Positions 13,965 to 52,705 of a stretch of 64,000 nucleotides of DNA are shown one piece after another (the stretch's first letter is position 1; each line of letters begins with the position of its first letter). The notes under the pieces are model-generated. The model was not told where the DNA came from and made no database searches. It saw only the letters and a program-made list of their open reading frames with translations. The position numbers were made by a program, and so were the translations under genes. This DNA is from Zootoca vivipara (Eukaryota), in the NCBI RefSeq assembly GCF_963506605.1, contig NC_083284.1, positions 24,490,001 through 24,554,000 of the forward strand, written 5' to 3'.

Positions 13965-14180
13965 TGGAAAACTGGTAGAATGTGAAGTGAAGATGGAGCC
14001 ATACAGTATCAAGGCCTAAAAGGCCACTTTGTTCTGTATCTTGATGCAAGGCAAGGCCACCTGCCCACCATTCCCATTTGAGAGTTGCCCAAGCCTAACA
14101 GTGCGCAGATGTCAAAACCCAACAGCCCCCCCAATATAAACTCAGCTGCAGTTCATTGTGGTCCTTTCACCTCTAGTGGC
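13965..14180 (-). pseudogene. Decayed orphan copy of the CFI catalytic-His exon plus adjacent intron
   Basis: Minus strand reads ATRGERTTMNCS*VYIGG(frameshift)CWVLTSAHC. It aligns to 18420-18630 and 37370-37580, including intron sequence. In-frame TGA at 14142-14144; donor site lost. Confidence 0.85.
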
Positions 14181-14776
14181 TTCAGCTGCTTTAGCTAGCT
14201 ACATTAAAGGGCTTGAATCATGTTCTGCATTTGCTGGCTTCTGAAGGTTAGAATAATGATAACCTAGTTGAGGAATATTCCCCAGAGCCTTCTTGCTCAT
14301 TGGAGGAGTCTGAAGTCTACTCCTCAGAGTCTGGGTGGTGATGACAGCGTTGTTGTTTAGATACCACCCTTCCATCTGAGGATCACAGGGCAGTTTACAA
14401 TACTTCCCTGGGTTTTAGCAGGTTGGGTGCAGGATCCAAGCATAGGTCCTCCCCTAAAACCAGGCTCTGACTTTTCTTCTGAGCTACTGCTGGGCTGGAT
14501 CACTAAATCTCTGAAGTTTATTGGCCCAAGGCCATGACAGTCTCCATGCATTTTTTTTAAACAATAGGGAAAATAGCACCAAAACAGGACTTCAGAGTTT
14601 TAAGGATTCTGCAACTGTTTGAAATGTTTGAAAATGGTCTATACTATATAGTAAGATACCTGAATATTCTCTGTCCATAGGTATTATGCCATCCTGTGTA
14701 CGGTGGAGCCTGCTTAGCAAATCTCAATACAAAACCCACAATAAAAACAAACATTTCCTTGGTGGTATACATCACT

Positions 14777-14782
14777 TTTATT
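14777..14782 (-). terminator. Candidate polyadenylation signal (AATAAA), CFI copy A
   Basis: AATAAA on the minus strand ~500 nt after the stop; conserved in copy B. Confidence 0.55.
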
Positions 14783-15283
14783 TGAATATACAATGTTTAC
14801 AAAAGAAATGCAGTAACTGTTTACAGAAGCACACATACTTTAAAATTTATTAAATGCTAAATTTCACAACTCATAACTGATGATCTTCTGCAGCATAATC
14901 CAGCCAGAGCGGAACACTTTTAACTTTCACAGATGAGAGATGGGAAATCAATGGCCTTCCACGTGTTAATGGACTACAGATCCCATCATCCCTGACTGCT
15001 GGCCATGCTGGCTGGGGCTAATGGGAACTGGAGCCTGAAACATCTGGAGGGCCAAAGATTCCTCCCCCATCCCTGCCACAGTTTTCAGCAGGCTTAAAGC
15101 TGCAACTGCACACATATTTACTTGGGAGTAAGTTGCGTCTTCTGAGTAAACTTAATCGTGTTGTACATTTCTCTCATTGAAACCACTAGGACAATGCTTC
15201 ACTTTGGCTGGATTGAGCCACAAGTTCTGTAGCCTATCTTTAGTTATTGCCAAGGCAGAAAGAGGTGATATTTACATTCAAAA

Positions 15284-30825
<15,542 letters not shown>

Positions 30826-30894
30826 GGTGAAGAGTGTCTGTCCGTATTTAGAATATTTTCTTTCCCTAAAACTTTTCCCCAGTCTCAGACTTCT

Positions 30895-30940
30895 GCTATG
30901 TGTTTAATTTTTAACCATTAGCAAATATTTATAAAGATGG
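30895..30940 (-). promoter_or_regulatory. CFI-A proximal promoter: HNF1-like and FOXA-like sites
   Basis: gtttaatttttaac resembles GTTAATNATTAAC; gcaaatattt is forkhead-like. Both lie ~80-110 nt upstream of the ATG and are identical in copy B. Confidence 0.5.
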
Positions 30941-32884
30941 TTCCGAAACAACTACGGAGAACATCCATGTGCATGGATGGTTCTCAGCTCTTAGACAAGA
31001 TCCTGCTTAAACCTCAATTCACTGTTCACTGCAAAAATGATAAGAGAAGCAAACAAGTAAAAAGACTGGTAGATCCCTAAAGGAATGTGCTGTCCTGTGC
31101 TGTCCTCTCACACAACTTTCTTAATACTCTCACTTATTTATGTAGCTGCTTTGTATTTGCCTGCTTCTCTGGAACAGAAGAAAATGGATGATTTGCATAT
31201 TTAACTGACAGGGGACTAAGATTTCAAGGTTGTGTTTGGCCAGTTGCTCAATGCCTTGGCAAACGGATAAAAAAAGTATTTGTGCACTAAGCTCTGGGAG
31301 TGCCAGTTTCCGGGAATGGCTAAGCTACTAGCCCTAAAAAAATCAACAAATAGTGGGGCCGTACAGTTCAAAAATCCCTCTATTTAATAAGAGCAAGGGA
31401 AGAAGGTTTGTGTTTTAGTTTTTCTCCTTAGGAACATAGGAAGCTCCCTTATACCGAGTCAGACCATAGGTCCATCTAACTCAGTGTTATCTGCAGCCTG
31501 TAGCAGCAACCTCTTCACATAAGCCTTTCCACCAGGGGCCGCCTCCAAGTTTATGTTACAGTACATAGTTCTTGCTCCCTCCCTTTCAGCTGTACTGATA
31601 CTTGGGGGACCACACCATAAAACAGTTGTAGGGGGAGTGGAGCAACAAATGCTCTTTGTCAGGGCTTTTTTTCAGCTGGGACTCACCGGAACTGAGTTCC
31701 TGCACCTGAGGGCGGGCACCGTTGCCATTATAAGAGAACAAGGTTCATGGTGAGTTCCGGCACCTCTTTTTCTGGAAAAAAAAACACTGAGCACCTTAAG
31801 ACATGCAAGAAAACGGGTTACCTCCAGGAATTTTGAAATGGGTTTAGTGACCCTGGAAGTCTGCATCTCTACATTCTGTAACTTCTCCTGCTGTACGCCA
31901 ATAGCTATTTGGAAAGAACATTTCTGTTTTGGCCATGCCTGCTTAGAAATAAGCACCACTCAGTTCAGTAGGGATTAATCTCAAATCAGGGTGCAGAAGA
32001 CTGTGGGATTTGTGTGATTACAATACAAATATTTCTTTCACTTTAAAACACAGCTGATTTCTCAGTAATTCTTGTCACTGATGATTAGGAAACAAGGAAG
32101 TAAACAGAAAATTAGCCCTACAGGTATTTCCCACACTTTGCCTGATTTAGGCTAGTAATATATGCGACTTTTCTATTGGTTCTGTGCAACAAATTCCCAG
32201 TAATCAAATGCAGAGTCAATGAAGCTTCTTAATAACTAGCATTCAAAACACTAGTTTGGAAACAATTTCTGCATGTAAAATTTTGAATGTAAAATTCAAA
32301 ATGAAGTGATAAGGTATGTTAAGGCTTCCTTATGGAAGTATCTAAAGGTATAGATTCAAAGGTATAGATTTAAAGGTAAAGGTAAAGGTAAGGAAGCCTG
32401 CAGCTGCAATAGACATTCTAATTCTGCTTACTGTTATAATAATTTGATTTATTATATGATTACATAAGGAAAGACCATAAGATTGAGGAAAAATTCAATA
32501 ATAATAAAGAAATTCTGGAACGTGATTCATCAGATGTTTTGGACTACGACTCTCATCAGCCCCAACCAGCTGTAATCAGGGATACAGACATATATTTTGT
32601 CCACAGATGTTGAAGTTTATTGGCCCAAGGCCATGACATCATCCATGCATTTCATTTGAACAATAGGGAAAATAGCACCTAAACAGGACTTCAGAGTTTA
32701 AAGGATTCTGCAACTGTTTGAAATGAAAATTTATAGCAGTGGGATTCTAGGCTGTACAGTAAGATACCTGAATATTCTCTGTCCATAGGTATTATGCCAT
32801 TTTGTGCACGGTGGAGCCTGCTTAGCAAATCTCAATACAATACCCAAAATAAAAACAAACATTTTCTTGGTGGTATACATCACT

Positions 32885-32890
32885 TTTATT
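32885..32890 (-). terminator. Candidate polyadenylation signal (AATAAA), CFI copy B
   Basis: Paralogous to 14777-14782. Confidence 0.55.
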
Positions 32891-33396
32891 TGAATATACA
32901 AGGAGTACAAACGAAATGCAGTAACTGTTTACAGAAGAACACATACTTCAAAATTTATTAAATGCTAAATTTCACAACTCATAACTGATGATCTTTTGCA
33001 GCATAATCCAGCCAGAGCGGAGCACTTTTAACTTTCACAGGTGAGAGATGGGAAATCAATGGCCTTCCACGTTTTAATGGACTACAAATCCCATCATCCC
33101 TGACTGCTGGCCATGCTGGCTGGGGCTAATGGGAACTGGAGCCTGAAACATCTGGAGGGCCAAAGGTTCCTTCCCCATCCCTGCCACAGTTTTCAGCAAG
33201 CTTAAAGCTGCAACTGCACACATATTTACTTGGGAGTAAGTTACGCCTTCTGAGTAAACATAATCATGCTGTACATTTCTCTCATTGAAACCACTAGGAC
33301 AATGCTTCACTTTGGCTGGATTGAGTCACAAGTTCTGCAGCCTATCTTCAGTTATTGCCGAGGCAGAAAAAAAAGAAATATTTACATTCCAAATCA

Positions 33397-36300
33397 CTAG
33401 TTATATCGCGAAATGAGATTCAGTCCAGTGTGATAGCCAATCCAACTGAAATAATGTGCCACTTTTGTATAAATCCCAGGGCGTCCTTTTTCACCACAAG
33501 TTTCCCTCCAGCTCACAACACCCCAAACATACCCCACATTATTAGAGTCAAAACAAACTAAGGGTCCTCCTGAGTCACCTTTACAGGAATCCACAGAGCC
33601 ATCATGCGTACCTGAACAGAGAAAAACCAAGTACAGTAAGTTGTTGAATGCATATTTTAATGGCAAGGATGCTACAGGTACCCTCACCCACAACAAAGGG
33701 AATTGTGGGTGCAGTTTCATTCCCAAACTATATTATTGATACTGGATACAGTCATAATAGAGTAGAAAGGCTGATCCTTGTCAAAGACTGACATAATTAT
33801 TCAGTGAACTGGTGTTATTCTGGATATTATCTTTAAATGCTGGTGATTTAGGGAGCAATCCAAACTCCTGCTAGTCCAGTGGAGTCACGTGGGGCAATGA
33901 GGCCATGGCTGCATCCACAGCCCTGCCATGCATGACAACCAAGGCAGAAAGGAGAAGGCAGATAAACATCCCCTCTTCCTGTTAACTTGTTAATAGTCAT
34001 GTGGGGAGCTATTTGTGTGTTTGTTTTGTCTCAGGCAATGATATGTGTTGACCTGTCTCTGCTTACTTAATACTGGCTCACAGGGCCGGCGCGTCCATTT
34101 AGGTAAACTAGGCAGCTGCCTAGGGCGCCAAAATGGAGGGTTCCCCCCCTGAGAATTTACCCCGGCGCAGGCAGGTCACTGTGGAGCCGCGCGACCAGAT
34201 CGCCTCGCGCTCTCGCTCGCTCCCCCGCTGCCACTCCTCTTCCCTCCGCCCACCCCGCCTCGCTCCGGCAGCAGCACGCAGCCTCCTCCCGCCGCGAGGA
34301 CCGCCCCCTCCACAAAGAAGGGAAGCACCGCGCGCTCGCACGCCAAGACACCGATGGAGAGAGAGGCTTTGTTCAGTGTTCCAACGTTGGCCGTTTCCAA
34401 CGTCCCCTTTGTTCAGAGGGTTTGTTCAGTGTTCCAACGTGGGCCGTTTCCGGCGTCACAGCGACCCCCTTCCCCGCCCCACCCTGCACAAAAAGAGGCT
34501 TCCGCTATAACAAGATCGGGGTAAATTCTGGTAAAAAATCCAGCAAAGGCGTTGCTAATCACCATCAGTAACAACAGTTCCATGTCATTTGGCAACCGTC
34601 CAAAGGGAGATTCCAAGCAGGGGCAAATTTAGAAATGATTTAATTATTTATTAAATTTGTATACCGCCCTATCTACTATACCTGTAGCTCTCAGAGCCGT
34701 TCACAACAGAAAATTACAATATACACAGAATACACAATGAAAATAAAAACAAGGACATGAAATGATTACATATGCTTTTGTTATGGGAATATCACACCCT
34801 TCAAATAAGTTGGTAAGCAGCAATTCTCTTGGATTCAACACTTTCCAGCTCCCCACCCCACAGTAAATATCATAGTAACCTAATGTATGATACTGAGTCA
34901 GACCATTGGTCTATCTACCACAGCATTCTAGTGTTTCCCAAAACTGGGTCACCAATTGTTTTTGGACTACAATTCCCATCATTCCTGACCACTTGTCCTG
35001 CTAGCTAGGGAACATGTGAGTTGTAGTCAAAAAAACAGCTGCCAACTCAAGACAGCCGCAGTGGAGGCGGCCTCAGGCTTGCGCTCCCCGTGTGAAGCTC
35101 CAGAGGCGCGCGAGCCTGGGGCTGCCTCCTCTGCGCCTGTCACTGTTGAGCGGCTTCAGGCCGCTATCCCGAGGCGCGTGCGTGCCTCTGGAGAGCAGGC
35201 TGAAGCCGCTCAACAGCTGACAGCCACAGTGGAGCCGGCCCCAGGCTCGCGCTCCCCGCGTGAAGCTCCGGAGGCGCGCGGGGGGCGCAAGCCTGGGGCC
35301 ACTTCGCTGCGCCTCTCAGCTGTTTTTTATTTTTATTTTATTTTTTCTATTTTCAATTTTTTCTATTTTCTATTTTTATTTATTATTTATTATATTTTTT
35401 AGAAGGTGATCTCACCTAGGGCGCAAAAAACCCTAGCACCGGCCCTGCTGGCTCATTAGTTTGCGTCCAGATGGGTGTCAAAAATGATAAGAGTTCATAT
35501 TCACCCGCACATTCCATGCCTTCAAAGTACCGGTTCCCGTAGATTTCAGAACAGTTTTCCATTAGATAAATGTAGCCCCACTTAAGGCCAAATTGCTTTT
35601 CAAACTCTAAAGAAGAAATAAATAACAGTTGGTGTTTCATTTTACCATTTATTAATTGTTCACACTTCAATACCGTACTTTCATTCACCGTCTATAAACT
35701 TATCCCATTTCAACCATGGTCGGGTTAATCTGATTTCCAAACCAGTTAGCAACAGTTATCTCCAAAGAGCTCACGCTGTAGTAGCTGAAACTTGAAGAGA
35801 CTCCCGAATCCACCTGCGGATTCCGTCCCTGAGAATTTCACAGGTGCTTTCTTTCCCCTTTGAGAATTTTAGAATGTAATTTCTTTTCTCATGACTTGAT
35901 GCAGGATGGTGGGGGAGGAGGAAGAAGGGGGTGAGATGTTCAGCTGAGACCAATAGGAAATGCTAGTGACACAGCTTTTAATGAGCTGTTATATAGAAGA
36001 GTTGAAAGGAAGTGCTTTTGTAGCTTAGCAAAGTATGAGGCCAGAAGAGATGAGGAAATTGTAACCATAATTCAAAGAAGTAATTAGCCTATTCCATTTA
36101 CCTTCATTGAGTCCCCAGCCGGACACTTTGCACTGGTGGCCACCTTTGAACATGTATTTTGACCAAGGGACACAGACTGGCACAGAGTCATGCGAGGAAC
36201 ATGTTGATTGGTTCTTGTCCCTGGGTTTCATCTCCAGCAAAGCAATGTCATTTTCATATGTTTTGGGGTTGTAATTCTCGTGAACTATTACTTTAACTAC

Positions 36301-39300
36301 TTGAAATACTTCTATTATACCATACTGTACTGCTGTGTTCAGCAGTCCAATCCATACCGTATAAGTATTTGCACGGTTCTCTCTGCAAAGAAGAAATGTG
36401 TTTCAAAGAGTGCAAGCAGAAACACAAACTTTGGATTATGAAACATTTTCCAGCTACAGTACTGAATCAAGTAGTCAAATGGATTATATACACAAGCACC
36501 CACTTTCAGCAATAGACTCCTGCACAGTTTTCCACGCCTTTATGAAATCCATTAGATTAAATCCATTAGATGAGAAAAGCTGAGATTCGTCTGAGATACA
36601 GCAAAAATAGCTGAGGCCTGGCTACAAATTTATTTATTTATTATTGCATTCATTTTAATATTTATTTAATCAAAACTTAATTATTTGCATTTCGGGGGGG
36701 GGGGAATCCATGGAAAATGAGACAATCAAACTGTTAAAAAAGCACAATAAAACGACATGCCAGCTGGAACAAGAAACTCTTCAGTCATGAACCTGAAGTT
36801 CAACAGAGAGTGTATCTCTTTAATTACAGTTGTGAGGGAGTTCAACAGTTTAGAGAAGGGCTCAGCAACCTTTCTCAGCCGTGGGCCAGTCCAATGTCCC
36901 CCAGACCATGTGGTGGGCTGGACTATATTTTGGAGGAGAAAAATGAGCAAATTCCTATGCCCCACAAATAACCCAGAGATGTATTTTAAATAAAAGCACA
37001 CATTCTACTCATGTAAAAACACCAGGCAGGTCCCACAAATAACCCAGAGATGCATTTTAAATAAAAGGAAATATTCTACTCATGTAAAAACACACTGATT
37101 CCCGGGACATCCACGGGCCAGATTGAGAAGGCGATTGGGCCGCATCTGGCCCATGGGCCGTAGGTTGCCTACCCCTGGTCTAGAGTTCACTTCTACTAGA
37201 TATTAGCAATGTGTTTGAGCCATGGGGGACCACCAACAGCGATTCCCCCAAAGATCTCAAACAATTTTTTAAAAAACTATAAGGGACCAGTTAAGTATTT
37301 TCTTTTATTTACTTGATGGGGGGGGCTGTCCCTCCTGCCCCCCCCACTACACCCATGTCAATTAAGCCAATATAGAACTGCTAGACAGTTGTAACATAGA
37401 TGGAGCCGTAGACGTCCAAGACCCTAAAAGTTCCTTTTGTTCTGTCTCTTGCTGCAAGGCAATTCCCACTTGAGAGTCGCCAAATCCACTTACCTAACAC
37501 AGTGTGCAGCCGTCAAAACCCAGCAGCCCCCAATATAAACGCCACTGCACTTCACTTCTGTCCCTTCCCCTTTAATGGCCACGTGCCAAGGAAATTCATC
37601 CTGCAAATACATGAGGCATGATGTTACACTTTTCTAGACCAGTTCTCCTACTAATATTACTTATGTCTATGTATGGGACGCGGGTGGCGCTGTGGGTTAA
37701 ACCATAGAGCCTAGGGCTTGCCGATCAGAAGGTCAGCGGTTCGGATCCCTGCCACGGGGTGAGCTCCCGTTGCTCGGTCCCAGCTCCTGCCAACCTAGCA
37801 GTTCGAAAGCACCTCAAAGTGCAAGTAGATAAAAAGGTACCACTACAGCGGGAAGTAAACGGCGTTTCCGTGTGCTGCTCTGGTTCGCCAGAAGCGGCTT
37901 TGTCATGCTGGCCACATGAGCTGGAAGCTGTACCCTTGGTCAATAACGCGAGATGAGTGCCGCAACCCCAGAGTTGTTCACGACTGGATCTAATGGTCAG
38001 GGTTCCCTTTACCTTTACCTATGTATGTGGTCACCGGATGGAACTGCAAGTAGGAGCAAAAATCAAGGTTGACAAAGTATGGTAGATATTTATTTCAGAC
38101 CCTACTGTTTCTACTCTACCTTCTTCAGGAAAAGTCAGAGAAACAAAGGTTCAGCATTTTGATGTGCTGCCTCTTCTTTTCCTGTTGGATAAAGAAATAG
38201 CTCCTTCGTCCATTCCACTTTTTGGGTTCCTACTTCTAGTTGGATTTTTAAAAATAATATTTGATGTACTAAAATGTCCTATAGAAAAAAAAATCTACCA
38301 TAGGCCCTTAACTGGAGTGTTTCACTGATTTCAACTGTGCTGCCGATTCAGATTCCCTAGCTCATGACTAGAGGGAGGGAAGGTTGAGGAGGAGGAAAGG
38401 GGGGGTATTGCTTGGCAATATTGTAAAAGACTGAAAATTAACTCTTTGCTTTCCTACTTATACTGTACTCAAAAAGCTTATGCTTTGCCATAGATTTCTA
38501 GGTTTTATCCATTGTCACCATTCCTGCAGGTCTAAAAAATGCATTAAAAGCACAGACTTGACATTACAGACACAACATTATAGTAGCTGTATTGTTACCG
38601 GTAGCTATGGCTGATTTTCCTTTTACCTTTCTTGCAGTGAATCCACCTGCGATTCGCTTCTGACGAGTAACAGTGTGGTTTGCAATGCCGCACTGTAATT
38701 GAGGTAACAATGTTTTGATCTTTCTTCTTTCTTTAATAAAAGAGATAAGCAGTGTCATGCTTACAACTCGTTCCCTTGCATTTGTTGAAATAAACTGCTT
38801 TGTGGTTTGATTTTTTAAAATGGCTTTTAAAGCCCTCTTTGGGCATTTAGTTTACATACGTGCATTGACGATAATGGAACGAAGGAGAGTTGGGTGCACT
38901 GGCAAATCCCACCTCCTCCAGCACATCACAGTCCCTGTCCTTCCAGTCCTTCACAGGATGGAGTGTCAACTTCTGAACTGGGGACCTCTTGTGGAGGCCG
39001 GCTGTGCAATCTAGAACCCCCACATATTAGGGATAATTGCTTGCAAAATGCACATTTTATAAGAAGTGCATTCAAAAATGTTATACCTACTTTAATGTAT
39101 TTTATTTTTCCTTTAAAAAATAATAATCACAAACTATTGCAGAAATTGGGTGTACTGAAGATTGAAAAAATGAGAAACCAAAACTGGCAGATTCAATTAA
39201 CCCTAACACTTATACAATAATTCATTTTAAGCACATATCCTCCAACATCCTGGGGACCAAAACAGAGGTGCTTATTTCTGGTCTCGTGACTCGCGCCAGA

Positions 39301-42300
39301 GTGCCAGACCAAAAAATGGGGCATTCCAGGATCCAATCAGAAGTCAGGATTGGCTGTTGTAATTCTGGGATATCCCACTTAAATCAGGACTGTTGAGCAA
39401 ATGTAAGCAGCTTTTTAAAAGGTTTCCTTTCAGGGAGTTGATGCGTGGCACTTTCCTGAGAAAAGAATCAAGACTCATGGGTTTCAAGGCCAGCTCTTTC
39501 CTTTGATGGTTGTTTTCAAAGGTGGAAAGGGGTTTGTTAAGCAACATACTCCTGTGTAGCCTTGAAGGCTTCATCCTCCGTTCATATATTCATGTGCTTT
39601 ACACAGCTGTTCACGTGAGCAGCTTCCAGTACCTTTCTGACAGCACACTGTCAAAAGTGCCCCGGAAGAGGTGATAAACCAACATGGTGAAAATCATTGG
39701 AAGCTCAGGAGAAAGCATGATTTGACACAAGCAGCTTCCCCATGGAGTAGTTTCCAATTTGCAAGAGCGATTAGTGAATGCATGTAATAAGTTCCATTGA
39801 GCAAAGCAGACTTCACTTATGAGTAAGCATGCATAGGACTGGACTGCTGAATCAGTCCAAGCAACTGTCATATTGTCTATTGATGATGATGATATAGTGT
39901 ATTTACCTTCATCCATAGACTGTTCAGCGTCTTCTGTTCCTTCTGAAATAAAATAAGAGTGTACAACTACATTAAATTATTGTAACTGAAAATCTAGTTT
40001 CAGATCCATGAACCTATGAACATTCCTGCAGCTGAGCCTTCACAGCTCTTTGATCTATAGCAATTAGCAAGTGATAGTGTTTATTTTCATGCTGCAAAGA
40101 ACTTAGTGATGTCCAGGAAATAATATTAAAACACAAAATGTTACCTCTTGCATTTGGTTCAGCTCTCCTATTGCGTATTTAAAACATACACAGACACACA
40201 TATATAAAAATGTAAAATGTCCATGTTTGTGTGCGATGACTTTTCTCCGAAACAGCTAGACCGATTGTGTTCAAATTTTGACACAACGTTCCATTCCAAT
40301 ATGCGAGTGTTTGCATAGCCTTAGATTTATACAGACATCACACCTGTCACAGGTAAAAACATGATATAGCGCCTTCCAGTGGTCGGCAAAGGAACAGACG
40401 CCATATCTTTTTGCGTAGCAATAGCGCCATCTGTTGGACGTCAAAGGAAAGGATCCTATAGAACATTCTATGGGGGGGGGGGGAAACAACATTTCCAGAC
40501 TCCCACCCCCTCCTCATCCTCCTCCACCTACCTCACCATTCCACAACCATAGCCGCCGGTGGGAGAGGGAGGATGGCAGGTAGCCCGGGAGTCAGGAAGG
40601 GCCTCACCGCTGCTCACCTCCAACCACCCGCAGACGTAGCCTCCACCGCTGCCACCGACACCGGGACACTCAGGCCAGGCCACGAGAGACAAGTCGGGCC
40701 CCACCGCCGCTGCCTCCGCCTCCGCCACCGCCTCTGTCACCAACGCCTCGAGAGGCAGGCCAGGCCTCCCCATGAGAGGCAGGCCGAGCCCCAAAGCCAC
40801 CGCCCCAGCCACCGTTGTGAGAGGCAGGCCAGGCCTCTCCGCAAGAGTCAAACTAGACCCCACTTCTGCCTCCGACGCCTACACTGGGAGACTCAGGCCG
40901 GACCGCAAGAGCCAGGCTGGGCCCCACACCCACCGCTGCATTCGCCGCCGATGTCGCGAGAGCCCGGTCAGGCCTCGCTGCAAGAGGTAGGCTGGGCCCC
41001 AAACTCAACGCCTCATCCACTGCTGACGTTGTAAGACGCAGGCCAGTCCTTGCTTCTCCTCGCCCCCATCACCGGGCAGAGAGGAAGGCTGGTAGGCAGG
41101 CTGGGCCTCACCTACCCTCACCTCCACCGCTCCTCACCTCCCATGCCGACACCACGAGAGCCACAGCAACGCATGGCCGGGTACAGCTAGTATTATATAC
41201 AGTATAAGTAGGATGTACACAGAAAAAAAAACATACATCAACGCACACTATGCTATGAATTAGACTGGATTGCTGGATATTGGTGTTTGAGAATCTAAAT
41301 GTTGGACGTCCAATAATGCCTGCATCATACTTGACCATTGGCTATGCTAAGATACCCTTCCATGTTTAGCCTTGCAGGGGTGAAGTTCTTGAAGAGTTCA
41401 GAGGAAGAAATTGCTTTGTTCAGCTGGGAAGCCAAATAATATTTTGGGGTAGATCACCCTGTACAACTTAAATCGCATTTTCTTATATGCATGAGTAATT
41501 AGCATGGAGTTGCAGAGTCTGTTCTTGCAGAGTTGCAATTTGTAAGTTGCCAATTGCCATTGTCCTCTCATTGTGGGACTAAGGCTGATTGCAGAGAGCA
41601 ACTCGGAAGCCTTCTTCACCTTGGTAGACAAGAGCAGCCTCTCCCAACCTTGGGTTTCCAGGTGTTGTTAAACTACAACTCTCATCAGCCCCAGCCAGCA
41701 TGGCCCAATGGTCAAGGATGACGAGCATTGTAGTCCAACAACATTTGAGGACCCAAGTTTGGGAATAGGACAGAGGAACATGTAAATGGGCTGATCACAA
41801 AATTTGCAAGCAATAATATGTACATTTTTTTCTTCTGACTCATTGGTTACATTGTTCTTTTTTCAAATAGTTTCAAAGTGTGCATTTATTTATTTGCTCT
41901 GTATAACTGTGGTTCCATGAATGGGCTGCAAATTAGAGACTGGTTTTTTCCTGAGCTATTCCTGCCCAATAAGCTGACCTATAAAAAGCAGGACACTCCT
42001 GAGAGAACCCAGAGAGAAACATAAGAATAGAGTTATAAAATAATATATATATATGAAAATTACCCGAATGTTCATTTCCTTCAGCTCTTTTTTTATCACC
42101 TATTTAAAACATGCACATATACATAAAATAAGTAAGGTGAACACATAAAAAACCAATCCACCAACAAACAATGAACTAGACTGACTTCCATTATATTAAG
42201 GGTCTGTAGTCCTGCAGATATTGTTAAACTCCACCTCTAAACTGGAAGGATTGTGGGGAGTGGTTCAAAACTACATATGAACCTTGCTCAGTAATACAGA

Positions 42301-45300
42301 TGACGAAGGGCCAAAGTAGACATTGGGAATCCCTATTAGCTTTCCTCTTAGGGCTAATAGCAGTTGTGCTGATGGGGTGATTTCTTTCTCTTTGTGCCTC
42401 TCTTGCTATTAATTTTTCTAGCATCATGTTTAATATGGACCTAGGCTCCATTCACTCATTTTGCTCTGCAGGGTGAAGTGACGTGACAAGTGTGATATAT
42501 AGACCAAACACACGCTCACTTTTTGATGAACTTTAAATGAAATTGTTAATAGTTGGATGGGTAGTGCTGCATTGCAGTGATAGTATAACTTCTATTGTGT
42601 TTTATATAGATATAGATACGTACACACTTTTCTACCATGATACCCAAGGTGGTTTACATTTCTTTAAAAATGTGATTAAATTACAATTCATTACGATTAT
42701 CACATTATTATGATTATGTCCTATTGCTGTGGACTGCTTTGTGCACAATGTGGAAAATGCAGAATATTGAACAGGGATGATTGCCTTCATTGAGAAAATA
42801 CATAGATATACTTGCAAACGGCTTCTGCTTCTATTATGAGAATGAGAAGGGTTTGGTTTTCCAATAGTATAAATCAACCTGGGAAGGTGACATGTGCTTT
42901 TAGAAACAAAATAAAAAAGTTCCTTCCAGTAGCACCTAAGAGACCAACTAAGTTTGTTATTGGTATGAGCTTTCGTGTGCACATGATGTGTTTTTAGCTT
43001 ACTGTTAATTTTAATTATGTTTTGAACCTTTTAAAATACCTGTTTTCAGCTGCCTTTTATTGACAACACCGCTATTAATGTTTTTTGGGTTTTTTTGTAA
43101 ATTGTTTAGGGGTTCTTTTTACAATCGAAAGGTATATATTTTTGTTAAATAAACAGAAAGCATTCCCTTTATGAGCCCCATTGAAATGAATGCTGCTCGT
43201 TTTCTTGAGCTGTTCTCTGTGTTTTTAGCTACAACAACCTCTTTGGATGGGGCAAGCTGTATGCCTACGATGAACAAAAATACAGCTGCAAATCATATAT
43301 CAGTAAGTGGAGCTCAAACCTCAAATCAAGTAAGCTATTAGGCTGCAATTGTTGTACTGTGAGTTGTGCGGGAGCACTGTTTAGGTTTTGATATTGCTTC
43401 TCTGGGTTAAACCTCAGAGCCTAGGGCTTGCTGATCAGAATCACCGCGACGGGGCGAGCTCCTGTTGCTCGGTCCCAGCTCCTGCCAACTTAGCAGTTTG
43501 AAAGCACGTCAAAGTGCAAGTAGATACAGGGGAAGGTAAACAGCATTTCCAAGTGCTGCTCTGGTTCACCAGAAGCGGCTTTGTCATGCTGGCCACATGA
43601 CCTGGAAGCTGTACGCCAGCTCCATCGGCCAATAAAGCGAGATGAGCGCCACAACCCCAGAGTCGGTCACGACTGGCCCTAATGATCAGGGGTCCCTTTA
43701 CCTTTACCTTTTAGACTGTTCTAAGCTTATCCAAACCTATTACATAGCCGGGGGGATTATTGTTTGAATGCAGCCACAAATAAATGGAAAGTATACTCTT
43801 ACACTCTTGGCGAGTCTCATCTTCTCCTGTTAAACAGTCCACTTCGTTGTCACAGACGTATTTTCTTGGAATACACACATCTGAATGACAGTGGAAGTTT
43901 CCCCCCCTGCATGCTATCAGAAAGAGATCAGTCAGAATATAAAACACAAAATGGTCCATAAGTAGCACAGTGGTTTAAGGCCTAAGCACAAAGAATTGTA
44001 GAGTTGGAAGGGACCATGAGGGTCATCTAGTCCAACCCCCTGCAATGTGGGAATCTTTTTGCACAACCCTGAGATTAAGAGTCTCATGCTCTATCGTTTG
44101 AACTATTCAGTTATTTTTTTATAATTAAGCAATGTAACTTTGAAATATTCTACATTCTTTTTGGAACCGACAGCTTTCCTGCTCCTTTGTGTGTATAAAG
44201 TTGAATGCAATTATTTCTCTTTTTGGGAGCAATGAAAACACCCCCACCCCACCCCATATGTTCATGGTTACTGTTACTGTTTTTAGTTCTGATCCATTGA
44301 TTTTGATTGGTGAAGCTTATGTTTGCTTTGTTCTGAGTTTTGAGTTAAAGTTGGTATATAAATCTGAGAAATATGACTTGAATATTTTAACCTTTTGTTT
44401 ACAAGCATTTTTTGACAAGCACATAGCTTTAAAGTAGCTTTCAGAGGCTTTTGTTTATGTGACTGATAATACACGAAAACAAGAATGATTACATAGCATA
44501 GAACATACCTTTGCAGCATACTTCATCACTTAAGTCTCCACAGTCGTTGACGCCATTGCATGTCTTACCGGAAGGGATGCATTTTCTATTGACACAACGG
44601 AATTCTCTTGGGGAACATTCTGTCAAGTGGGATGAGAAACAAATAATGTTTTGGTTAGATATTCTGCAGCAGAAAAAGAAATATATAACTCCATAGGTTT
44701 GTTTTCTGGGATGGGTGCACTGTAGCTGAAGGCATGAAACTATTGTGTTCAGCATAACTGTCTGTCTCTGGTTTAATTATTAAGAACATTTCTATGTTTC
44801 CTTTTCATCAGTGACAAATCCAAGAAAGCAAACAAAATCCAACACAGCAAACAAAAAGATGAATTCATCATAGCATTCACAAGGATTTTTTTAACCAAAA
44901 AAAAAAAAATCAGAAGGAGAGATTTAAAACTGTATGTTGTGGGGAGGGGAACAGGCCCTGGCTGGCCCTGGGGGGGCGGTCACTTTGAAAGTTGAGTGGG
45001 GCCTGTTTACCCGACTTCATTCAGGACTCATGATGATTATCATTTACAGTAGTCATTTTCCTTGCAGCAGTGTCCCAAAGCAACTAACATTAAATCCAGC
45101 TAAAACAAACACAACCAGTAAGAACCTAAAAACACAGCAGCACGTCTTCAGGTAGCCCAATTGACTATGAACACTGACTGCGTTGTTTCAAAGAATCCAC
45201 AGTGTAGTTTGACTAAATATGCAGCAACAGAAGCAGTAATTAAGAGGCATCCTTTCTATCATATTGACTGAGTGACTGCATTTATGCAATGCCTTTCTGC

Positions 45301-47833
45301 CAAGGCTCCCAAGCTGGTTTACTTTTTTTTAAAGTAGAGCATGAGGCTATTTCAGGGTTGCGGGTTCTAGCCCCACATTGGGCAAAAGATTCCTGCATTT
45401 CAGGGGGTTGGACTAGATGACCCTCGTGGTCCCTCTTATGGTTCTAAGATTCTATTCTATGAAATGGTAGAAGATATAAAGCAAAAGTGTCCTGCCATTC
45501 CAAAAGTCTCTTCTTGGCCTGGTGGTATAAGATCCCTGGCCTGGGCCTTGTTGCCTCAGGGTACACTAGTTTTTCTTAAGCCACCCCAGGGAAAGTGAGA
45601 GAGGGACTGCACCAACATGTCATTTACAGGCAGATACTAACACTGTAATGAACTCAGGTGCTGAGTTACAACAGCTCTGTATCCACAAGAGCGATATCAA
45701 CACGCTAAAACCCTGTGACATGTTCAGTGACTACAGAATGTTGAGTTATCTCTTCCAAGGGGAGTTAATGCCAGTGGAGGGTGAGGAGAGGAGGAATGGA
45801 ATGGAATGGAGTCTCCTGTAAGAGGGCATGGCTAGCACATTGAAGAGGAATATTTCATATTGCAGTATTTTGTTCCAAGTTGGAGAATTTGATTATCAAG
45901 CCAGAAATGGCTAACTACAGACAATTCCCCCCACCCACCCACAAAAACTTCTTTTACCAACCTCTATGTGTTGTATGGCACACCACTTTTGCCACTTTCT
46001 CCTTAGTTTTATTCACTCTAGTTAAAGTACATTCTGCTAGGCTGGTCTCTATTCCTCTGCATCTTGCCTTAAGGCATTCCAATGAATTGGAGTCTTCTTC
46101 TGGGTCAACAGTGTCTGTACGATCAGCCCCTCTGAGCAATGCAAGAAAGAAGAAGAGAAGTAATCATTGGCCCTTTGTTACTTTTGGAATATAAAATGCA
46201 TTCTCTATAACATGGTTTGCTAGAAAACTAACATGTGTTATATATTAAAAGTACCGTTTATTCAGACAATAAGTGTGTGTGTGTGTGTGTGTGTAGCTAC
46301 TGAACTGTAAGGAGCCTAGCCTCTCTTTGGTTTTGCCAGTTTATGGGGAGCAGCCAAAAACACCTCAAGACAGAAAAGACAACAGCAGGCTAGATGGGCA
46401 AATAATATGACCTTCCAGAAGGTTCAGTAGTGTTCAGTAGTGCTCCGTGGACTCAAGAAAGGTCTTCCCAAGCGCTGCTACTTCAAAGGGTACCTACCTC
46501 AAACTGCATACGGTACTCTTGAGTACCCCCTGAATAAAAAGCACTGGCTGTATGAACTATGGCCCTGACCTCGTAATCCACAGATGGAAATTAGAACCCT
46601 CTCAGGTGTTGTTAGACCCTCAGCTCCTGTCACATACTAAAACCCTCCCTTGCACCCAGATGAGACCCTTGCATGGGGAAGAACACAGGCATGATGGGAG
46701 TTTGAGTCCAAGAACACCTGCAGGGCCACAGATTCCCCATCCCTGCTCAAATCCATCATAAAGATGGATGCCACGAATTCAGAGTTTTTCTTAAGATTTA
46801 TTTAAGTAACATTTTATCCATATAAGCAGCTCTCCATTCCACCCCAGAATCTTACTCTGGAAAACCAAGATGTCTGCAGGCCACATTTGCTTCATTCATA
46901 CCCCAATGAAATCCACACACAGGTGTCTTTGGGGATTGATTCACTTCCACTTGGATAATTCCTGTTGATGTTGCATTTTCAGGCTTCAACGAAACTTGAA
47001 AAGTCTCTAGAAAGCAAAGCAAAATCTGCTCATGTTTAGGTCGGTAAGGTTTACAAAAGACAGCAATGTGGACAAAACCCACTTTGTTGTATGCAAGGCG
47101 CCATGTGCATAGTTCTGTTGGCGTTGTTTGTCTGAAGGGTGGAGTTAAAATAAGTGAAAAGATAAATTAACCTTGAATGGGAAGACAGGTACAGTATTAT
47201 TTAATCAAATGCCACATTCTTTGTCAATTTGCTTCCTCTCTGGGATGCCAGATTTGAATTTCTACAACAATTCACACAAATGCATACCAGGAAATAGCTG
47301 GATGTTTTATATAGATACAAAAAGCACAGGGTTTTTCCCCCAATTACAGGGCATTGTTTATACACTTCTTCTTACCTTGAGAGCTGCATCTTCCTCTGTA
47401 CATAAATCTGCTCTTTTTACGCTGACATTCCAAGCTCTTTAGCTGGCAGTAATTTAAAGTCCTCTTCTCTGTAGAACAAACCAAGGTTCCCTTTCTTGGG
47501 CATTGGTAAGGTAGCTTACAGATACAGGAGCCATCCACACACCTCTGCCATGGCGGGCAAAACACTTTCTCGCAAGACTTCTGTGTGTATCCATTGTTTA
47601 CACATTCTTCTATCAGATATGTATCGTCCTAAAAACAAATACTATTCAGTAACAGAAGTTGATTTGTTGTTTTCACACTTCCTTCAGATCCATGCAAGCC
47701 TTAAAGTATTACCAAAAAAATGTGTTTCTTACAATGCCAACCATTTTTTAAAAGAAATAAAAATCCTTACCTTTTGTTGAAAAATTCCAAGTGGTAAGCA
47801 CAAAATAAACACGAGAGCTGATAATGATTTCAT
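33397..47833 (-). CDS. CFI: Complement factor I-like, copy B (diverged paralogue), ~579 aa if the 30-nt micro-exon is skipped
   Basis: Exons 47833-47771, 47628-47376, 47006-46856, 46131-45962, 44619-44509, 43913-43803, 42099-42064, [40174-40145 acceptor mutated], 39942-39907, 38730-38627, 37600-37494, 36382-36102, 35606-35505, 33611-33397. No internal stop or frameshift; triad intact; TAG one codon earlier than copy A. Confidence 0.9.
34081..35447. mobile_element. Non-autonomous hAT element, CFI-B specific
   Basis: TIR cagggccgg...ccggccctg; perfect 8-bp TSD ctggctca; GC-rich subterminal repeats. Confidence 0.9.
36856..37177. mobile_element. hAT MITE, CFI-B specific
   Basis: Ends aggg..agcaacct / aggttgcctacccctg; TSD gt(t/c)tagag; internal ~70-bp direct repeat; absent in copy A. 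Confidence 0.75.
37676..38018 (+). mobile_element. Full-length Sauria SINE, CFI-B specific
   Basis: gggacgcgggtggcgctgtggg head, (ccttta)n tail, TSD ctatgtatg. Confidence 0.88.
40195..41190 (+). mobile_element. Non-autonomous Helitron-like element, CFI-B specific
   Basis: AT-rich start tatataaaaatgtaaaatgtcc; 3' hairpin gccacagcaacgcatggc followed by gggtacagCTAG|T; no TSD; absent at ~20170. Confidence 0.7.
43403..43711 (+). mobile_element. Sauria SINE, CFI-B specific
   Basis: Sauria body with (ccttta)n tail; absent from copy A. Confidence 0.85.
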
Positions 47834-47902
47834 GGTGAAGAGTGTCTGTCCGTATTTAGAATATTTTCTTTCCCTAAAACTTTTCCCCAGTCTCAGACTT
47901 CT

Positions 47903-47948
47903 GCTATGTGTTTAATTTTTAACCATTAGCAAATATTTATAAAGATGG
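47903..47948 (-). promoter_or_regulatory. CFI-B proximal promoter: HNF1-like and FOXA-like sites
   Basis: Same motifs as the copy A promoter. Confidence 0.5.
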
Positions 47949-49949
47949 TTCTGAAACAACTACGGAGAACATCCATGTGCATGGATGGTTCTCAGCTCTT
48001 AGACAAGATCCTGCTTAAACCTCAGTTCACTGTTCACTGCAAAAATGATAAGAGAAGCAAACAAGTAAAAAGACTGGTAGATCCCTGAAGGGATGTGCTG
48101 TCCTGTGCTGTCCTCTCACACAACTTTCTTAATACTCTCACTTATTTATGTAGCTGCTTTTTATTGGCATGCTATTCTGGAGCAGAAGAGAATGGATGAT
48201 TTGCATATTTAACTGACAGGGGATTAAGATTTCAAGGTTGTGTTTGGCCAGTTGCTCAATGCCTTGCCAAAGGGTAAAAAAGGTATTTGTGCACTAAGCT
48301 CTGGGAGTGCCAGTTTCTGGGAATGGCTAAGCAACTAGCCCAAAAAAATAAACGAATAGTGGGGCAGTTCAAAAAAGAAGGTTTGTGTTTTAATTTTTCT
48401 CCTTAGGAACATAGGAAGCTCCCTTATACCGAGTCAGACCATAGGTCCATCTAACTCAGTGTTGTCTGCAGCCTGTAGCAGCAACCTCTTCACATAAGCC
48501 TTTCCACCAGGGGCCGCCTCCAACTTTATGGTACAGTACATAGTTCTTGCCCCCTCCCTTTCAGCTGTACTGATACTTGGGGGACCACACCATAAAACAG
48601 TTGTAGGGGGAGTGGAGCAACAAATGCTCTGTGTCAGGGCTTTTTTTCAGCTGGGACTCACCGGAACTGAGTTCCTGCACCTGAGGGCGGGCACCGTTGC
48701 CATTATAAGAGAACAAGGTTCATGGTGAGTTCCGGCACCTCTTTTTCTGGAAAAAAACACTGAGCACCTTAAGACATGCAAGAAAACGGGTTACCTCCAG
48801 GAATTTTGAAATGGGTTTAGTGACCCTGGAAGTCTGCATCTCTACATTCTGTAACTTCTCCTGCTGTACGCCAATAGCTATTTGGAAAGAACATTTCTGT
48901 TTTGGCCATGCCTGCTTAGAAATAAGCACCACTCAGTTCAGTAGGGATTAATCTCAAATCAGGGTGCAGAAGACTGTGGGCTTTGTGTGATTACAATACA
49001 AATATTTCTTTCACTTTAAAAACACAGCTGATTTCTCAGTAATTCTTATCACTGATGATTAGGAAACAAGGAAGTAAACAGAAAATTCGCCCTACAGGTA
49101 TTTCCCGCACTTTGCCTGATTTAGACTAGTAATGTATGCGACTCATAAAAACTTTTCTATTGTTTCCGTCCAAAAAATTCCCAGCAATCAAATGCAGTCA
49201 GGTAAGCTTCTTAATAACTAGCATTCAAAACACTAGTTTGGAAATAATTTTCGCATGTAAAATTCAAAATAAAGCGAATAGGTATGTTCAGATATTTCCA
49301 TAACAATGCCCGCAGCTACAATAGACATTCTTATTCTTACTGTTATAATAATTTATTTTCTTCTTCTTATTATTAAGGATTTTCTTGATTTACAAAGCTA
49401 TACAATGCAATGTCTCTCGTAACATTTTTGCAAATCAGTTTCATTTGTTGAGACATTGGGAAGAAAGGGGAAAAGATATAGATGGGGGAGAGATGGGTGG
49501 GGGTGGGTGATTTGATTTATTTTATGATACATAAGGAAACACCAAACGATTGAGGAAAAAATAGAAAAAGTTTTTTTCTCTGGAACCTGATTCATTAGAT
49601 GTTTGTGACTACGATTCTCATCAGCCCCAACCGGGGATACAGACATACATTTTGTCCACAGCAGTTGACAAAAAGATTCACTTTGGAAGTTTCGCTTAAA
49701 TTTTCGGAGGGGTAGCAAGTGTCCCACCGGTGTGGCAGCACAAACTTATTGCGACACCATCTTCCATCAGGTGCATGCAAACTACACAGCAATGTGGAAA
49801 CAAGCGAATTACGAAAACAGACACGGTGTTCATTTTTTTAGCAATATGATTTATTACAAGTTGCGGCTTCTGCTGCAGCCAGTGACATCCGAACTGTGCT
49901 AAATGCCGCAAATTTATAAAATGCTGCAATTTTCTCTGTGTGTGTGTGT

Positions 49950-50900
49950 GTTTCTGCAGCACACGAATACACATTCCGTGAGATAATCCGTAAGGTAATA
50001 CATATTCCACGAGACAATCTGCCATAGAACCTGCACCTTGCGGAGCTTTGGGCGCCCGTCAATCCGCCTGCCTCGCTTCGCTTATGGGATCGCCCTTCCT
50101 CGTTTCCCAAGCGGCGGGGAAACAACAAGCTGGAGAAACAACACTTCTCTATGGTTGGCTAAACGTCGTAAAAGGGAAGCGCGTGATTTTACGGCAGGCC
50201 CGCGATTGGCTGGATCGCCGGCAAGCGTGGAAGGGGAAGAGGAGGGTCGCCGGAAGTGGCCTTCGCGCGTGAGTCCTTGGCGGAAGAGCGGTGCGGCCAC
50301 GTGGGGAGGAAGAGCGAAGCGTGCTGCGCTTAGGTGGGAGATCCTCGTAGAGTCGGAAGGGACCCTGAGGGTCATCCAGCCCGACCCCCTGCAATGTTGC
50401 TTGCAGGGGCTTGCCTCGCCTTGCAGGCTCTTGGAGCCCGTGTGGGCTGGGAGGAGGGGCGGGGGTCGTGGTTGCTGCTGCTGCTGCTTTGCAAAACTCC
50501 GGGTTGGGCACCTGCTTCTGAGTCGCTGTTTCTCCCAGTTTCCTCCCTTGAGCCTCCTGGCCGTTTATGAAGCGGGACTGTGTTGGGAAATACGTGCCTC
50601 TTAGGTTGGGATGTGGAACGCACTTACTTGCGAGTAAACCCCATTGAACTCGGTGAGGCTTACTCCTAAGGCGATGCGTGATATTAAAACGACTCCCTTC
50701 CTCATATGCTGGGTTTTGCCCGAACTATTCATACCGAATAGTTTTTTGGGTTTTGACGGGCAGGTTTTTTCCCTACACCTGAAGCACTGCGCTTTGTTGT
50801 TATTTTTAAAGAAACACCACGAATGTCGGAAGCACAAGATTCGGATCGCTTGTTGGGTTTTTCGAGGCTAGGCAGCATCGCTGTGCACGTTTTGAGAAAT
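49950..50900 (+). promoter_or_regulatory. CpG-island promoter and probable non-coding first exon of GAR1
   Basis: CpG-rich, with an ETS motif ccggaagtg at ~50250 and an inverted CCAAT (gattgg) at ~50204. Lies ~2.4 kb upstream of the GAR1 ATG exon. Confidence 0.7.
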
Positions 50901-51846
50901 GGTGTGGGAGAAGAAAGGGAGAAGAGAAGCTTGTGAGGAAGGTAGCAGCATCAAAAGTTTGGGGTTTAGGCGTTTTGCAACACTGCCACTGCAGAGTGGT
51001 CATTTCCCCACCTGTAATTGCCATGAGCTTCAAGTACCTGCTTGGGGAGGGGCCCTGGTCCCTAGGGACTTTTGAAAAAAAATGGTGTTCTGTGGTGTTG
51101 GTTTCAAGGTTGCACAGTTGGGATAGTTCTCTGCCAATCATGGAACCTTAAAACTACAGTCGTTGCAGCAGCAAAAGTCATTAAGGCTGTCTCCCTTAAT
51201 GTAATATCCTCCAGATGTTCTGGACTACAGTTTTCATCACACCTGATCGTTGGGAATCAATAGTTCAAAACTTATGGAGGGCACCAGATTGGGAAGGCTG
51301 GTTTAAGGGCTAAAGAGTAGCTCTTACATAATTGTTTAACAGTTTTCATTACCTAAAAATGAAAAAATTTCTATACTGAAGAGTAAATAACACTTCAGTA
51401 TAAGTTTAGTGTAATATTTGAAATTGAAAGTGGTGCAAGGAAGATAACAGTGGGTGAAGAAATAGCTGTTCGCCTTCTCCCCTTTTAAAATAAAAACAAC
51501 AACAGTACTTGCCTTGCTTCTTTTCATAACACTGATACAATGCCTGTGATGATTTGAGTATTTAGGTAAGGTTTTGGTTCACTTTCATGGGCCAAATGAT
51601 AAAGTTGTACCATTTTAAAGAATAATGGTTCAAGCTAAAGGTAGCTTCACTCCTTGAATAGTACCTCATTTCTTAATCTCGCCTTTTGTTGGAATAAAGT
51701 TGTGTTGTATAACAGAATTAAAATGTAGGGAGTCCTATTCATTTATTTGGTGTCTTAGACTCATGGTGGCCTTTGGCAGATAGTACCTTCCTACTCCCTC
51801 ATTTAGCTCATGAATGGGGTAAACTTGCTTTCGAAAACTACAAGTA

Positions 51847-52071
51847 CAGTGGTACCTTGGAAGTCAAATGGAATCCGTTCTGGAAGTGCATTCGACTTCC
51901 GAAACGTTCGGAAATCAAGGCACGGCTTCCGATTGGCTGCAGGAAGCTACTGCAGCCAATCGGAGCCGCATTAGACATTCAAGTTCCAAAGAATGTTCAC
52001 AAACCAGAACACTCACTTCTGGGTTTGCTGCATTCGGGAGCCAAAATGTTCGAGTCAACCAAGATATGACT
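51847..52071. mobile_element. Tc1/mariner MITE
   Basis: ta|cagtggtaccttgg ... ccaagatatgactg|ta. Confidence 0.7.
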
Positions 52072-52091
52072 GTATCTGTTTGATTCATATA

Positions 52092-52325
52092 CAGTGGTAC
52101 CTCGGTTTTTGAGTGTCTCAGAAGCCAAACGTTTTGGATGCCGAAAACCTGGAAGTAAATGCTTTTATTTTCAAACGCTCAGAAGTGGAATGGCTTCCGC
52201 TGCATGTTTTTCCATTTTTTTTTTCATTGAACTTGCATCCAGCCCCTTTGTGCCTCGGTTTTTGAACATTTCAGAAGTCAAACGGTCTTCCAGAATGGAT
52301 TACGTTTGAGAACCAAGTACCACTG
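52092..52325. mobile_element. Tc1/mariner MITE
   Basis: ta|cagtggtacctcggtt ... aaccaagtaccactg|ta. Confidence 0.75.
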
Positions 52326-52705
52326 TATTACAACTGCTGTGTGGAAGCCACAGGAACAGCTAAGGAATCAAATATATCTGTGCATCTAGTTTTTGGATGG
52401 TTGGTGCAACTGAAATGTGAAAAAAGAATTTTTTTATGGGAGAAAAAAATCTCTTGGTACAGGAATTTTATGAGGATTAAGTGACTGATTTCAATAACGT
52501 AAAAAACCCAAACTCAAAACCTAACGTCTTATACCTTCAAGGTAACTGATCTTTTGAAAAGTATTTTGGATGATGTAGATTAATACATGATGACGCTAGT
52601 GAATGCATGCAGTGAAATGACTGGCACAAGTCTAGAGTCAAGCTCTACAGAGATATATAGGAATGCTATTGATTTTCATGAATTTTTATTGAACAGAAGG
52701 GAGTC

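Follow-up and report, generated by a model that had tools for sequence, protein, structure and literature searches.

The window analysed here, a stretch of 64,000 nt from Zootoca vivipara, is the locus of CFI, the gene encoding complement factor I (FI), and carries two tandem copies of this gene. Copy B is a whole gene, not a fragment, and encodes Arg instead of Gly at residue 216 (chymotrypsin numbering throughout), at the mouth of the S1 pocket of the protease domain. We favor, at a probability of about 0.55, the interpretation that copy B is young and still coding and specifies an FI-like protein that has an intact catalytic triad and lacks canonical proteolysis, the canonical function being held by copy A. 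In most vertebrates, FI is a single-copy, essential brake on complement, and its partial loss in humans leads to kidney and eye disease.

Replacement of Gly216 by Arg in copy B

The two genes and the codon in question are located in the window as follows:

14512..32613, minus strand: duplication unit A, containing the canonical CFI gene (copy A; exons from 30825 to 15284; XP_034967715.1)
32611..49668, minus strand: duplication unit B, containing the whole CFI-like gene (copy B) and about 1.8 kb of duplicated upstream sequence, in blastn blocks colinear with unit A
33505..33507, minus strand: codon 216 of copy B, AGG (Arg); the copy A codon is GGT (Gly) at 15395-15397

The initial annotation of the window had claimed that codon 216 changed from GGT in copy A to AGG in copy B, that the nearby PGVY motif became PGIY, and that Asp189 was kept. 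All three claims were borne out by re-reading of the minus strand. Copy B reads TGG AGG GAA ACT TGT (W R E T C) where copy A reads TGG GGT GAA AAT TGT (W G E N C), so that SWGENCG is replaced by SWRETCG, a motif also present in the database protein XP_060134483.1. The codon change involves two bases, at codon positions 1 and 3. PGIY results from a GTT to ATT change, and the stretch containing Asp189, Asp194, and Ser195 is identical in the two copies. The two-base codon change was rejected as a signal of selection, since adjacent double mismatches account for 0.108 of the mismatches in introns versus 0.099 in exons. Double-base codon changes match the intronic mutation pattern, which would be in line with a decaying gene.

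HMMER searches with the last exon of copy B returned FI structures as the best structure matches (5O32_I, 2XRC_A, and 9B3H_A; E values of 2e-32 to 4e-30), the next family being represented by TMPRSS11D (3e-18). In the end-to-end alignments with the human FI structures 5O32, 2XRC, and 9B3H (E of ~1e-32 to 1e-30), the Arg of copy B stands opposite the Gly of SWGENCG. Codon 216 corresponds to G547 of human FI. Gly216 was found in 135 of 135 canonical CFIs, from amphibians to birds, and Gln30, Gly43, and Val227 were likewise invariant in this set; all three of the latter residues are changed in copy B. Given this conservation, we do not regard the replacement of Gly216 as a chance difference.

In proteases of the trypsin fold, Gly216 and Gly226 keep the S1 pocket open for Arg or Lys at P1, and the backbone of residues 214 to 216 pairs with the substrate. 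The residue set of an Arg-specific S1 pocket (Asp189, Gly216, and Gly226) is broken in copy B by the Arg at position 216. The remainder of the catalytic machinery is retained, including His57 (TAAHC), Asp102 (YENDIAL), Gly193, Asp194, and Ser195 (CKGDSGGP), Asp189, and Gly226. Classical pseudoproteases are defined by the loss of at least one residue of the triad, and copy B has lost none. The light chain begins after TRQKR in both copies, with IAGG in copy B and IVGG in copy A; Ala17 was found in 0 of the 135 canonical CFIs.

The human FI variant G547R (rs746522519), for which the mutagenic primer encodes SWRENCG, has been described as a "type 2" functional variant (PMC11792236). Cells secrete this variant and process it fully into a heavy and a light chain, but fluid-phase assays detected no cleavage of C3b or C4b (PMC11792236). 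In a bead assay, the IC50 of G547R was 6.0 µg/ml, compared to 0.0196 µg/ml for the wild type and 2.7 µg/ml for the catalytic mutant S525A (PMC11792236). In related proteases, Gly216 of MASP-3 is the site of a mutation causing 3MC syndrome (PMC3701661), and the Arg218-Asp189 salt bridge of factor D is a releasable self-inhibitory lock on S1 (PMC3949522). Since the same residue inactivates human FI, copy B is predicted to be secreted and activated yet unable to cut C3b or C4b, and loss of activity of the lizard protein is, by transfer from human G547R, most likely. The reading offered by the initial annotation therefore stands in part: that Arg216 restricts S1 and makes copy B a triad-intact pseudo-protease, or else a protease of altered specificity, is backed by the inactivity of human G547R, and its suggestion that copy B could act as a decoy competing for C3b or cofactors is plausible.

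Organization of the two CFI genes

Comparison of the window with itself by blastn and mapping of exons revealed a tandem duplication of about 17 to 18 kb that contains two complete 14-exon genes, both on the minus strand. Units A and B were 79 to 97% identical across colinear blastn blocks, or 91 to 97% without the two shortest blocks. Exons were located with lacertid CFI proteins, splice sites were then read, and the exons were analysed singly; the full-length proteins that we used were database entries (P0292 for copy B, and P0301) matching the exons exactly. Exon lengths were equal in the two copies, except that the stop codon of copy B occurs one codon earlier. In both genes, the 14 exons specify a signal peptide, FIMAC, SRCR, and a pair of LDLa modules, followed by three short linkers, and the protease domain is spread over five exons. 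The exons of copy B are listed below from last to first.

33397..33611, minus strand: exon 14, the last protease exon, with the TAG stop; Asp189, Ser195, R216, T219, R224, and I227
35505..35606, minus strand: exon 13, protease; AG/GT sites intact
36102..36382, minus strand: exon 12, protease; Asp102
37494..37600, minus strand: exon 11, protease; His57, with Q30H and G43S at otherwise invariant sites
38627..38730, minus strand: exon 10, RQKR activation site followed by IAGG (IVGG in copy A)
39907..39942, minus strand: exon 9, linker
40145..40174 (to 40176 with the acceptor), minus strand: equivalent of the 30-nt exon 8; acceptor AC instead of AG
42064..42099, minus strand: exon 7, linker
43803..43913, minus strand: exon 6, LDLa2
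44509..44619, minus strand: exon 5, LDLa1
45962..46131, minus strand: exon 4, second half of SRCR
46856..47006, minus strand: exon 3, first half of SRCR
47376..47628, minus strand: exon 2, FIMAC/Kazal; six B-derived residue changes, NGT sequon lost
47771..47833, minus strand: exon 1, signal peptide, identical to that of copy A

The peptides encoded by the exons of copy A are present exactly in XP_034967715.1 (Zootoca vivipara CFI isoform X1) and those of copy B, minus exon 8, in XP_060134483.1 (579 aa). RefSeq names the latter "complement factor I-like isoform X1," annotates it as protein-coding, and lists several isoforms for copy B, a treatment at odds with a decaying gene. The Pfam domains FIMAC_N, Kazal_CFAI, SRCR, LDLa (twice), and Trypsin were complete in both copies. 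The copy B protein P0292 matched PF21286, PF21287, PF00530, PF00057 (two stretches), and PF00089, all above the curated cut-offs, as did copy A. Domain order, closest structures, a furin-type dibasic site, the triad, and descent from a CFI gene all identify copy B as a CFI.

Splice sites were all AG/GT in both copies, with the sole exception of the AC acceptor of copy B exon 8. This 30-nt exon is in frame, is skipped in the RefSeq model of copy B, and is preceded in copy A by an AG acceptor at 20149-20150. Since copy A also has an annotated isoform lacking this in-frame exon, loss of the acceptor fixes copy B in a splice form that already existed as an alternative, and the gene is not disabled by it. 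A cryptic AG is located 7 nt downstream of the copy B acceptor and would shift the frame if used. Apart from this acceptor, copy B has lost no splice site, and its coding sequence contains no frameshift, indel, premature stop, or start loss. None of the lesions by which a non-processed pseudogene is recognised, in the reading frame, at the start codon, or at an essential splice site, was otherwise present.

Age and origin of copy B

Trees of 38 to 39 squamate and outgroup CFI proteins (quick trees with SH-aLRT support) placed copies A and B as sisters (SH-aLRT of 98) within the Lacertidae, adjoining Lacerta and Podarcis. The terminal branch was 0.069 for copy B versus 0.019 for copy A. In Podarcis muralis, P. 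raffonei, P. lilfordi, and Lacerta agilis, the only proteins found have Gly216. Copy B is a real and complete tandem duplicate of CFI, of recent origin in the Zootoca lineage. Our literature searches retrieved nothing on CFI duplicates of squamates or of Zootoca, and the RefSeq label is only "CFI-like."

Divergence between introns of copies A and B was 3.5% in the 5' half and 5.9% in the 3' half of the gene and ranged from 1.5% to 7.9% across introns (about 1.5% for introns 1 and 8, 2.5% for intron 12, and 7.9% for intron 11). This mosaic, which extends over 14512-49668, is suggestive of a rather recent duplication followed by gene conversion in patches. We also considered an ancient R216 paralog kept distinct despite gene conversion, an origin that was rejected for Zootoca because the two copies are sisters, intron divergence does not exceed the value for intron 11, and Podarcis and Lacerta have Gly216 only.

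Just outside unit A, at 14060-14180 (minus strand), we observed a relic of the His57-encoding exon 11 of CFI together with a piece of the downstream intron. The relic is ~78% identical to copies A and B, has a stop and a frameshift, and is suggestive of an older, mostly deleted third copy. It agrees with copy B in having Ser at codon 43 and in a Gly-Glu pair. Conversion from the third copy is an unlikely source of the copy B differences, in view of the low identity of the relic, of only two states held in common with copy B (one at a CpG), and of the lack of synonymous differences in exon 12.

Evolution of copy B and possible early pseudogenisation

Copies A and B differ at 45 residues, among which 32 changes are derived in copy B and 8 in copy A, with 5 ambiguous, upon polarisation by Lacerta and Podarcis (P = 2e-4). 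Pairwise dN/dS was 0.93 overall, 0.51 for the heavy chain, and 1.35 to 1.44 for the protease exons. With half of the intron divergence taken as the neutral expectation for one lineage, omega of the copy B lineage was ~1.5 to 1.6 in the protease domain (P values of 0.009 to 0.04) and ~0.8 in the heavy chain.

Because copy B is a young duplicate of the Zootoca lineage that has evolved at about the neutral rate or faster, early pseudogenisation is a live rival to the interpretation that we favor. In that case, copy B would be redundant and only beginning to decay, G216R would be one of many neutral changes, and the frame would be intact through youth. The overall dN/dS and the excess of changes derived in copy B are in agreement with this scenario, as are the substitutions at invariant sites and the loss of a glycosylation sequon and of one splice acceptor. 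The sequon, NGT in FIMAC, was lost by replacement of Asn by Lys (47491-47493, minus strand, in exon 2), a position occupied by Asn in 130 of 133 canonical CFIs. G43S also fits decay: it falls on a CpG, is found in the relic copy as well, and may be a mutational hotspot.

The coding sequence of copy B is better preserved than decay predicts. Non-repeat frame-breaking indels, which occur at 0.0055 per base in introns, predict ~4.9 events in the coding sequence of copy B, versus 0 seen (P = 0.0076), if exons are taken to mutate like introns and half of the events to have occurred on copy B. No premature stop was seen versus ~1.95 expected, the one new stop dropping the final residue only. All cysteines were retained (43/43). 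Changes affected 4 to 5 of ~25 invariant protease sites, compared to ~9 under neutrality (P = 0.02 to 0.05).

The distribution of the changes also argues against decay. Those derived in copy B amounted to 3 in the 208 residues of SRCR, the LDLa modules, and the linkers, to 6 in the 84 residues of FIMAC (P = 0.019), and to 23 in the 265 residues of the protease domain (P = 0.0004). This skew between domains exceeds the 1.7-fold difference in intron divergence. No A-derived change was found in FIMAC, versus the six derived in copy B. All 18 differences between the two copies in exon 12 are nonsynonymous, and they are confined to its first 64 codons (P = 0.015 for the absence of synonymous ones). 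Within the complex that FI forms with C3b and factor H, it is through FIMAC and the protease domain that FI contacts the other two proteins. The absence of frameshifts and stops, the retention of cysteines, the sparing of invariant sites, and the skew between domains point to continued selection on copy B as a coding gene, and selection may still be keeping its reading frame open. With the recurrence of the same changes in other squamates (see below), these features lead us to regard early pseudogenisation as unlikely, although it is the strongest of the rivals.

Recurrence of the changes in other squamate CFI copies

Additional or aberrant CFI copies were found in several squamates. The CFI-like protein of Hemicordylus capensis (XP_053113088.1) reads SWDKGCG...RPGIY, with G216D. 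Those of Thamnophis sirtalis and T. elegans (Thamnophis XP_013909891.1 and T. elegans isoform X2) read GRRETCG...QPGLY. Gekko kuhli KAL8176374.1 has GLRERCG, and Varanus komodoensis A0A8D2L1C6 has S-RERCG in addition to D102G and G226S. Copy b of Erythrolamprus reginae has V17A, D102N, W215G, and G226S. Two further proteins have lost triad residues: copy 2 of Liasis olivaceus (P0275), with Q30H, G43S, H57Q, D194V, and S195L, and Phrynosoma platyrhinos JD844_026565 (P0331), with H57S, D102N, S195A, altered residues 215-216, and V227I.

The changes in these copies cluster at residues 214-219 and 226-227 and include G216R in three lineages besides Zootoca, G216D, N219T/R/G, and V227I/L. Invariant-site changes in seven aberrant copies were most frequent at residues 216 (5 copies), 219 (5), 215 (4), 227 (4), and 226 (3). 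On the tree, the aberrant copies of Hemicordylus, Erythrolamprus, Thamnophis, Gekko kuhli, and Varanus each fell beside sequences of the same species or clade, indicating that they are not orthologues of copy B. Gly216 was therefore replaced separately at least five times among the squamates, four times by Arg. If the six one-step outcomes from the Zootoca GGT codon are taken as equally likely, Arg would be reached in 4 of 5 replacements with a probability of 0.003. The five changes of copy B at invariant sites were all at sites also changed in another squamate copy (permutation P = 0.0086). Both this coincidence and the recurrence of Arg at position 216 count against early pseudogenisation of copy B.

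The triad-dead proteins of Liasis (P0275) and Phrynosoma (P0331) paired weakly on the tree (SH-aLRT of 88, long branches) and may represent an older triad-dead CFI paralog present in iguanians and snakes. An entry labelled Ailuropoda melanoleuca (P0256; UniProt A0A7N5P2Y7) was 69 to 72% identical to squamate CFIs and had snake-like motifs; this "panda" sequence looks like reptile contamination in that proteome.

A broader proposal, which we put forward tentatively and hold to be on balance improbable, is that squamates repeatedly duplicate CFI into non-cutting copies, by Arg216 in at least four lineages and by S1 remodelling or triad loss, and that such copies are kept as competitors holding C3b-cofactor complexes uncleaved. 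Copy B would be the youngest of them, with its triad intact.

Alternatives in which copy B is active or an artefact

Copy B might instead still be an active protease, either because an Arg216-Asp189 lock is released by substrate or cofactor, as in factor D, or because a pocket remodelled at residues 216, 219, 224, and 227 accepts a new P1 residue or substrate. The retention of the triad, Asp189, Asp194, Gly193, Gly226, the activation site, and the disulfide cysteines is compatible with activity, as is the omega of ~1.5 of the protease domain with co-changes around S1. The Arg218-Asp189 bridge of factor D, which is located in the same loop, offers a precedent for a releasable lock (PMC3949522), and T. 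elegans showed only an R216 copy in our searches. Two observations make activity doubtful. Human G547R was inactive even with C3b plus factor H or with C4b plus cofactor (PMC11792236), so that the natural substrate complex does not unlock the enzyme. Other squamate extra copies have lost triad residues (H57Q/S195L in Liasis copy 2, D102N in Erythrolamprus copy b, D102G in Varanus, and H57S/D102N/S195A in Phrynosoma copy 2), suggesting that catalysis is dispensable in those copies.

The least probable alternative, an assembly or sequencing artefact affecting the second copy or its Arg codon, such as a haplotype placed in tandem, is very improbable, since the units differ by 3.5 to 6% with 88 indels and kilobase-scale insertions, far more than heterozygosity, the Arg codon differs at two bases amid nine other differences in exon 14, and copy B words recur in DNA from other samples. 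In DNA runs of six samples from three studies, the share of 31-mers from the protease half of copy B was 0.52 to 0.84, versus the 0.13 that a genome with unit A only would give (the share of sampled copy B words also present in unit A). Copy B therefore exists in several animals.

Favored interpretation of copy B

In the scenario that we favor, CFI was duplicated in tandem, recently, in the Zootoca lineage, and copy B still encodes a protein of five domains that can be secreted and activated by furin and that retains His57, Asp102, Ser195, Asp189, and Gly226. Replacement of Gly216 by Arg at the mouth of the S1 pocket would have abolished C3b and C4b cleavage, as judged by human G547R, and copy A would carry the canonical CFI function.

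Several observations weigh against this scenario. The transfer from human G547R takes no account of N219T, H224R, and V227I of copy B, which might compensate for Arg216. The substitution rate of copy B is about neutral overall, and a decaying copy would look alike. The changes at other invariant sites (Q30H, G43S, V227I, and V17A) and the loss of a conserved glycan site fit relaxed constraint, and the indel test depends on the two assumptions given above. Protein searches detected no canonical second CFI copy in T. elegans; if the R216 protein is the only FI of this snake, R216 is not always inactivating. Finally, two possible RNA runs gave copy B k-mer shares of 0.13 and 0.16, which are ambiguous for expression since they fit copy B mRNA (0.124) and equally DNA of unit A (0.132).

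Other features of the window

Intron 5 of copy A (23128-25590) holds ~2.4 kb absent from copy B. A strong GC skew (0.32) was observed at 24001-26000, where Tandem Repeats Finder detected no large array. A repeat of ~300 bp is present in five copies (12544-12858, 15845-16203, 37674-38020, 43438-43713, and 62241-62582), which are 79 to 90% identical and found in both orientations. It is probably a SINE-type element, and some of its copies explain differences in intron length between copies A and B. Upstream of copy B, the region 50000-62000 has a sustained positive GC skew and includes a Pro-rich low-complexity open frame (52669-53070, minus strand). Two withdrawn RefSeq models of Zootoca CFI-like proteins (P0303 and P0307) join exons 3 to 5 of copy A to exons 6 to 14 of copy B, an order that is not colinear in the window. 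These may be model artefacts or may hint at a hybrid copy or structural variant.

Significance and comparison with known systems

Copy B is a natural case of an otherwise intact second CFI bearing the exact substitution that kills the human enzyme. The locus makes testable the notion that complement regulators spawn inactive competitors that tune the system, as has been proposed for the factor H-related proteins. It also opens a comparative series (Zootoca, Hemicordylus, Thamnophis, Gekko, Varanus, Erythrolamprus, Liasis, and Phrynosoma) in which the same few active-site positions change repeatedly, residues 214-219 and 226-227 being those most often changed in the aberrant copies. Inactive paralogs of complement regulators are already known; copy B would differ in that its S1 entrance, and not its triad, is the site of inactivation. 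If copy B is merely a decaying duplicate, the locus illustrates ordinary gene birth and death.

The closest known system is human G547R, in which the same Gly of SWGENCG is replaced by the same Arg with the triad and Asp189 untouched, as in copy B. The human variant is a rare heterozygous allele of the sole CFI gene, linked to the risk of macular degeneration, whereas copy B is a second gene beside an intact one and carries N219T, H224R, V227I, G43S, Q30H, and V17A in addition. Factor D resembles copy B in being a complement serine protease with an intact triad and an Arg within the 214-219 loop, which in factor D pairs with Asp189 and leaves the free enzyme inactive. Unlike in copy B, the Arg of factor D is at position 218, and its lock opens on binding to C3bB, whereas human G547R was not rescued by C3b plus cofactor.

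If copy B is a decoy, its role would be akin to that of CFHR1-5, which are tandem duplicates of a complement regulator that keep the ligand-binding parts but not the regulatory activity, and whose presumed role is competition with the parent. CFHR1-5 differ in belonging to a CCP-repeat family, which is not a protease family, and in having lost function via loss of domains rather than by a point change. Serine protease homologues, such as haptoglobin, HGF, and azurocidin, likewise retain the trypsin fold for binding and not for cutting. The classical members of that group lack triad residues, whereas the triad of copy B is complete and its predicted defect lies at the entrance to S1. Should the squamate copies prove to be competitors, they would form a protease-derived counterpart of the factor H-related "de-regulators."

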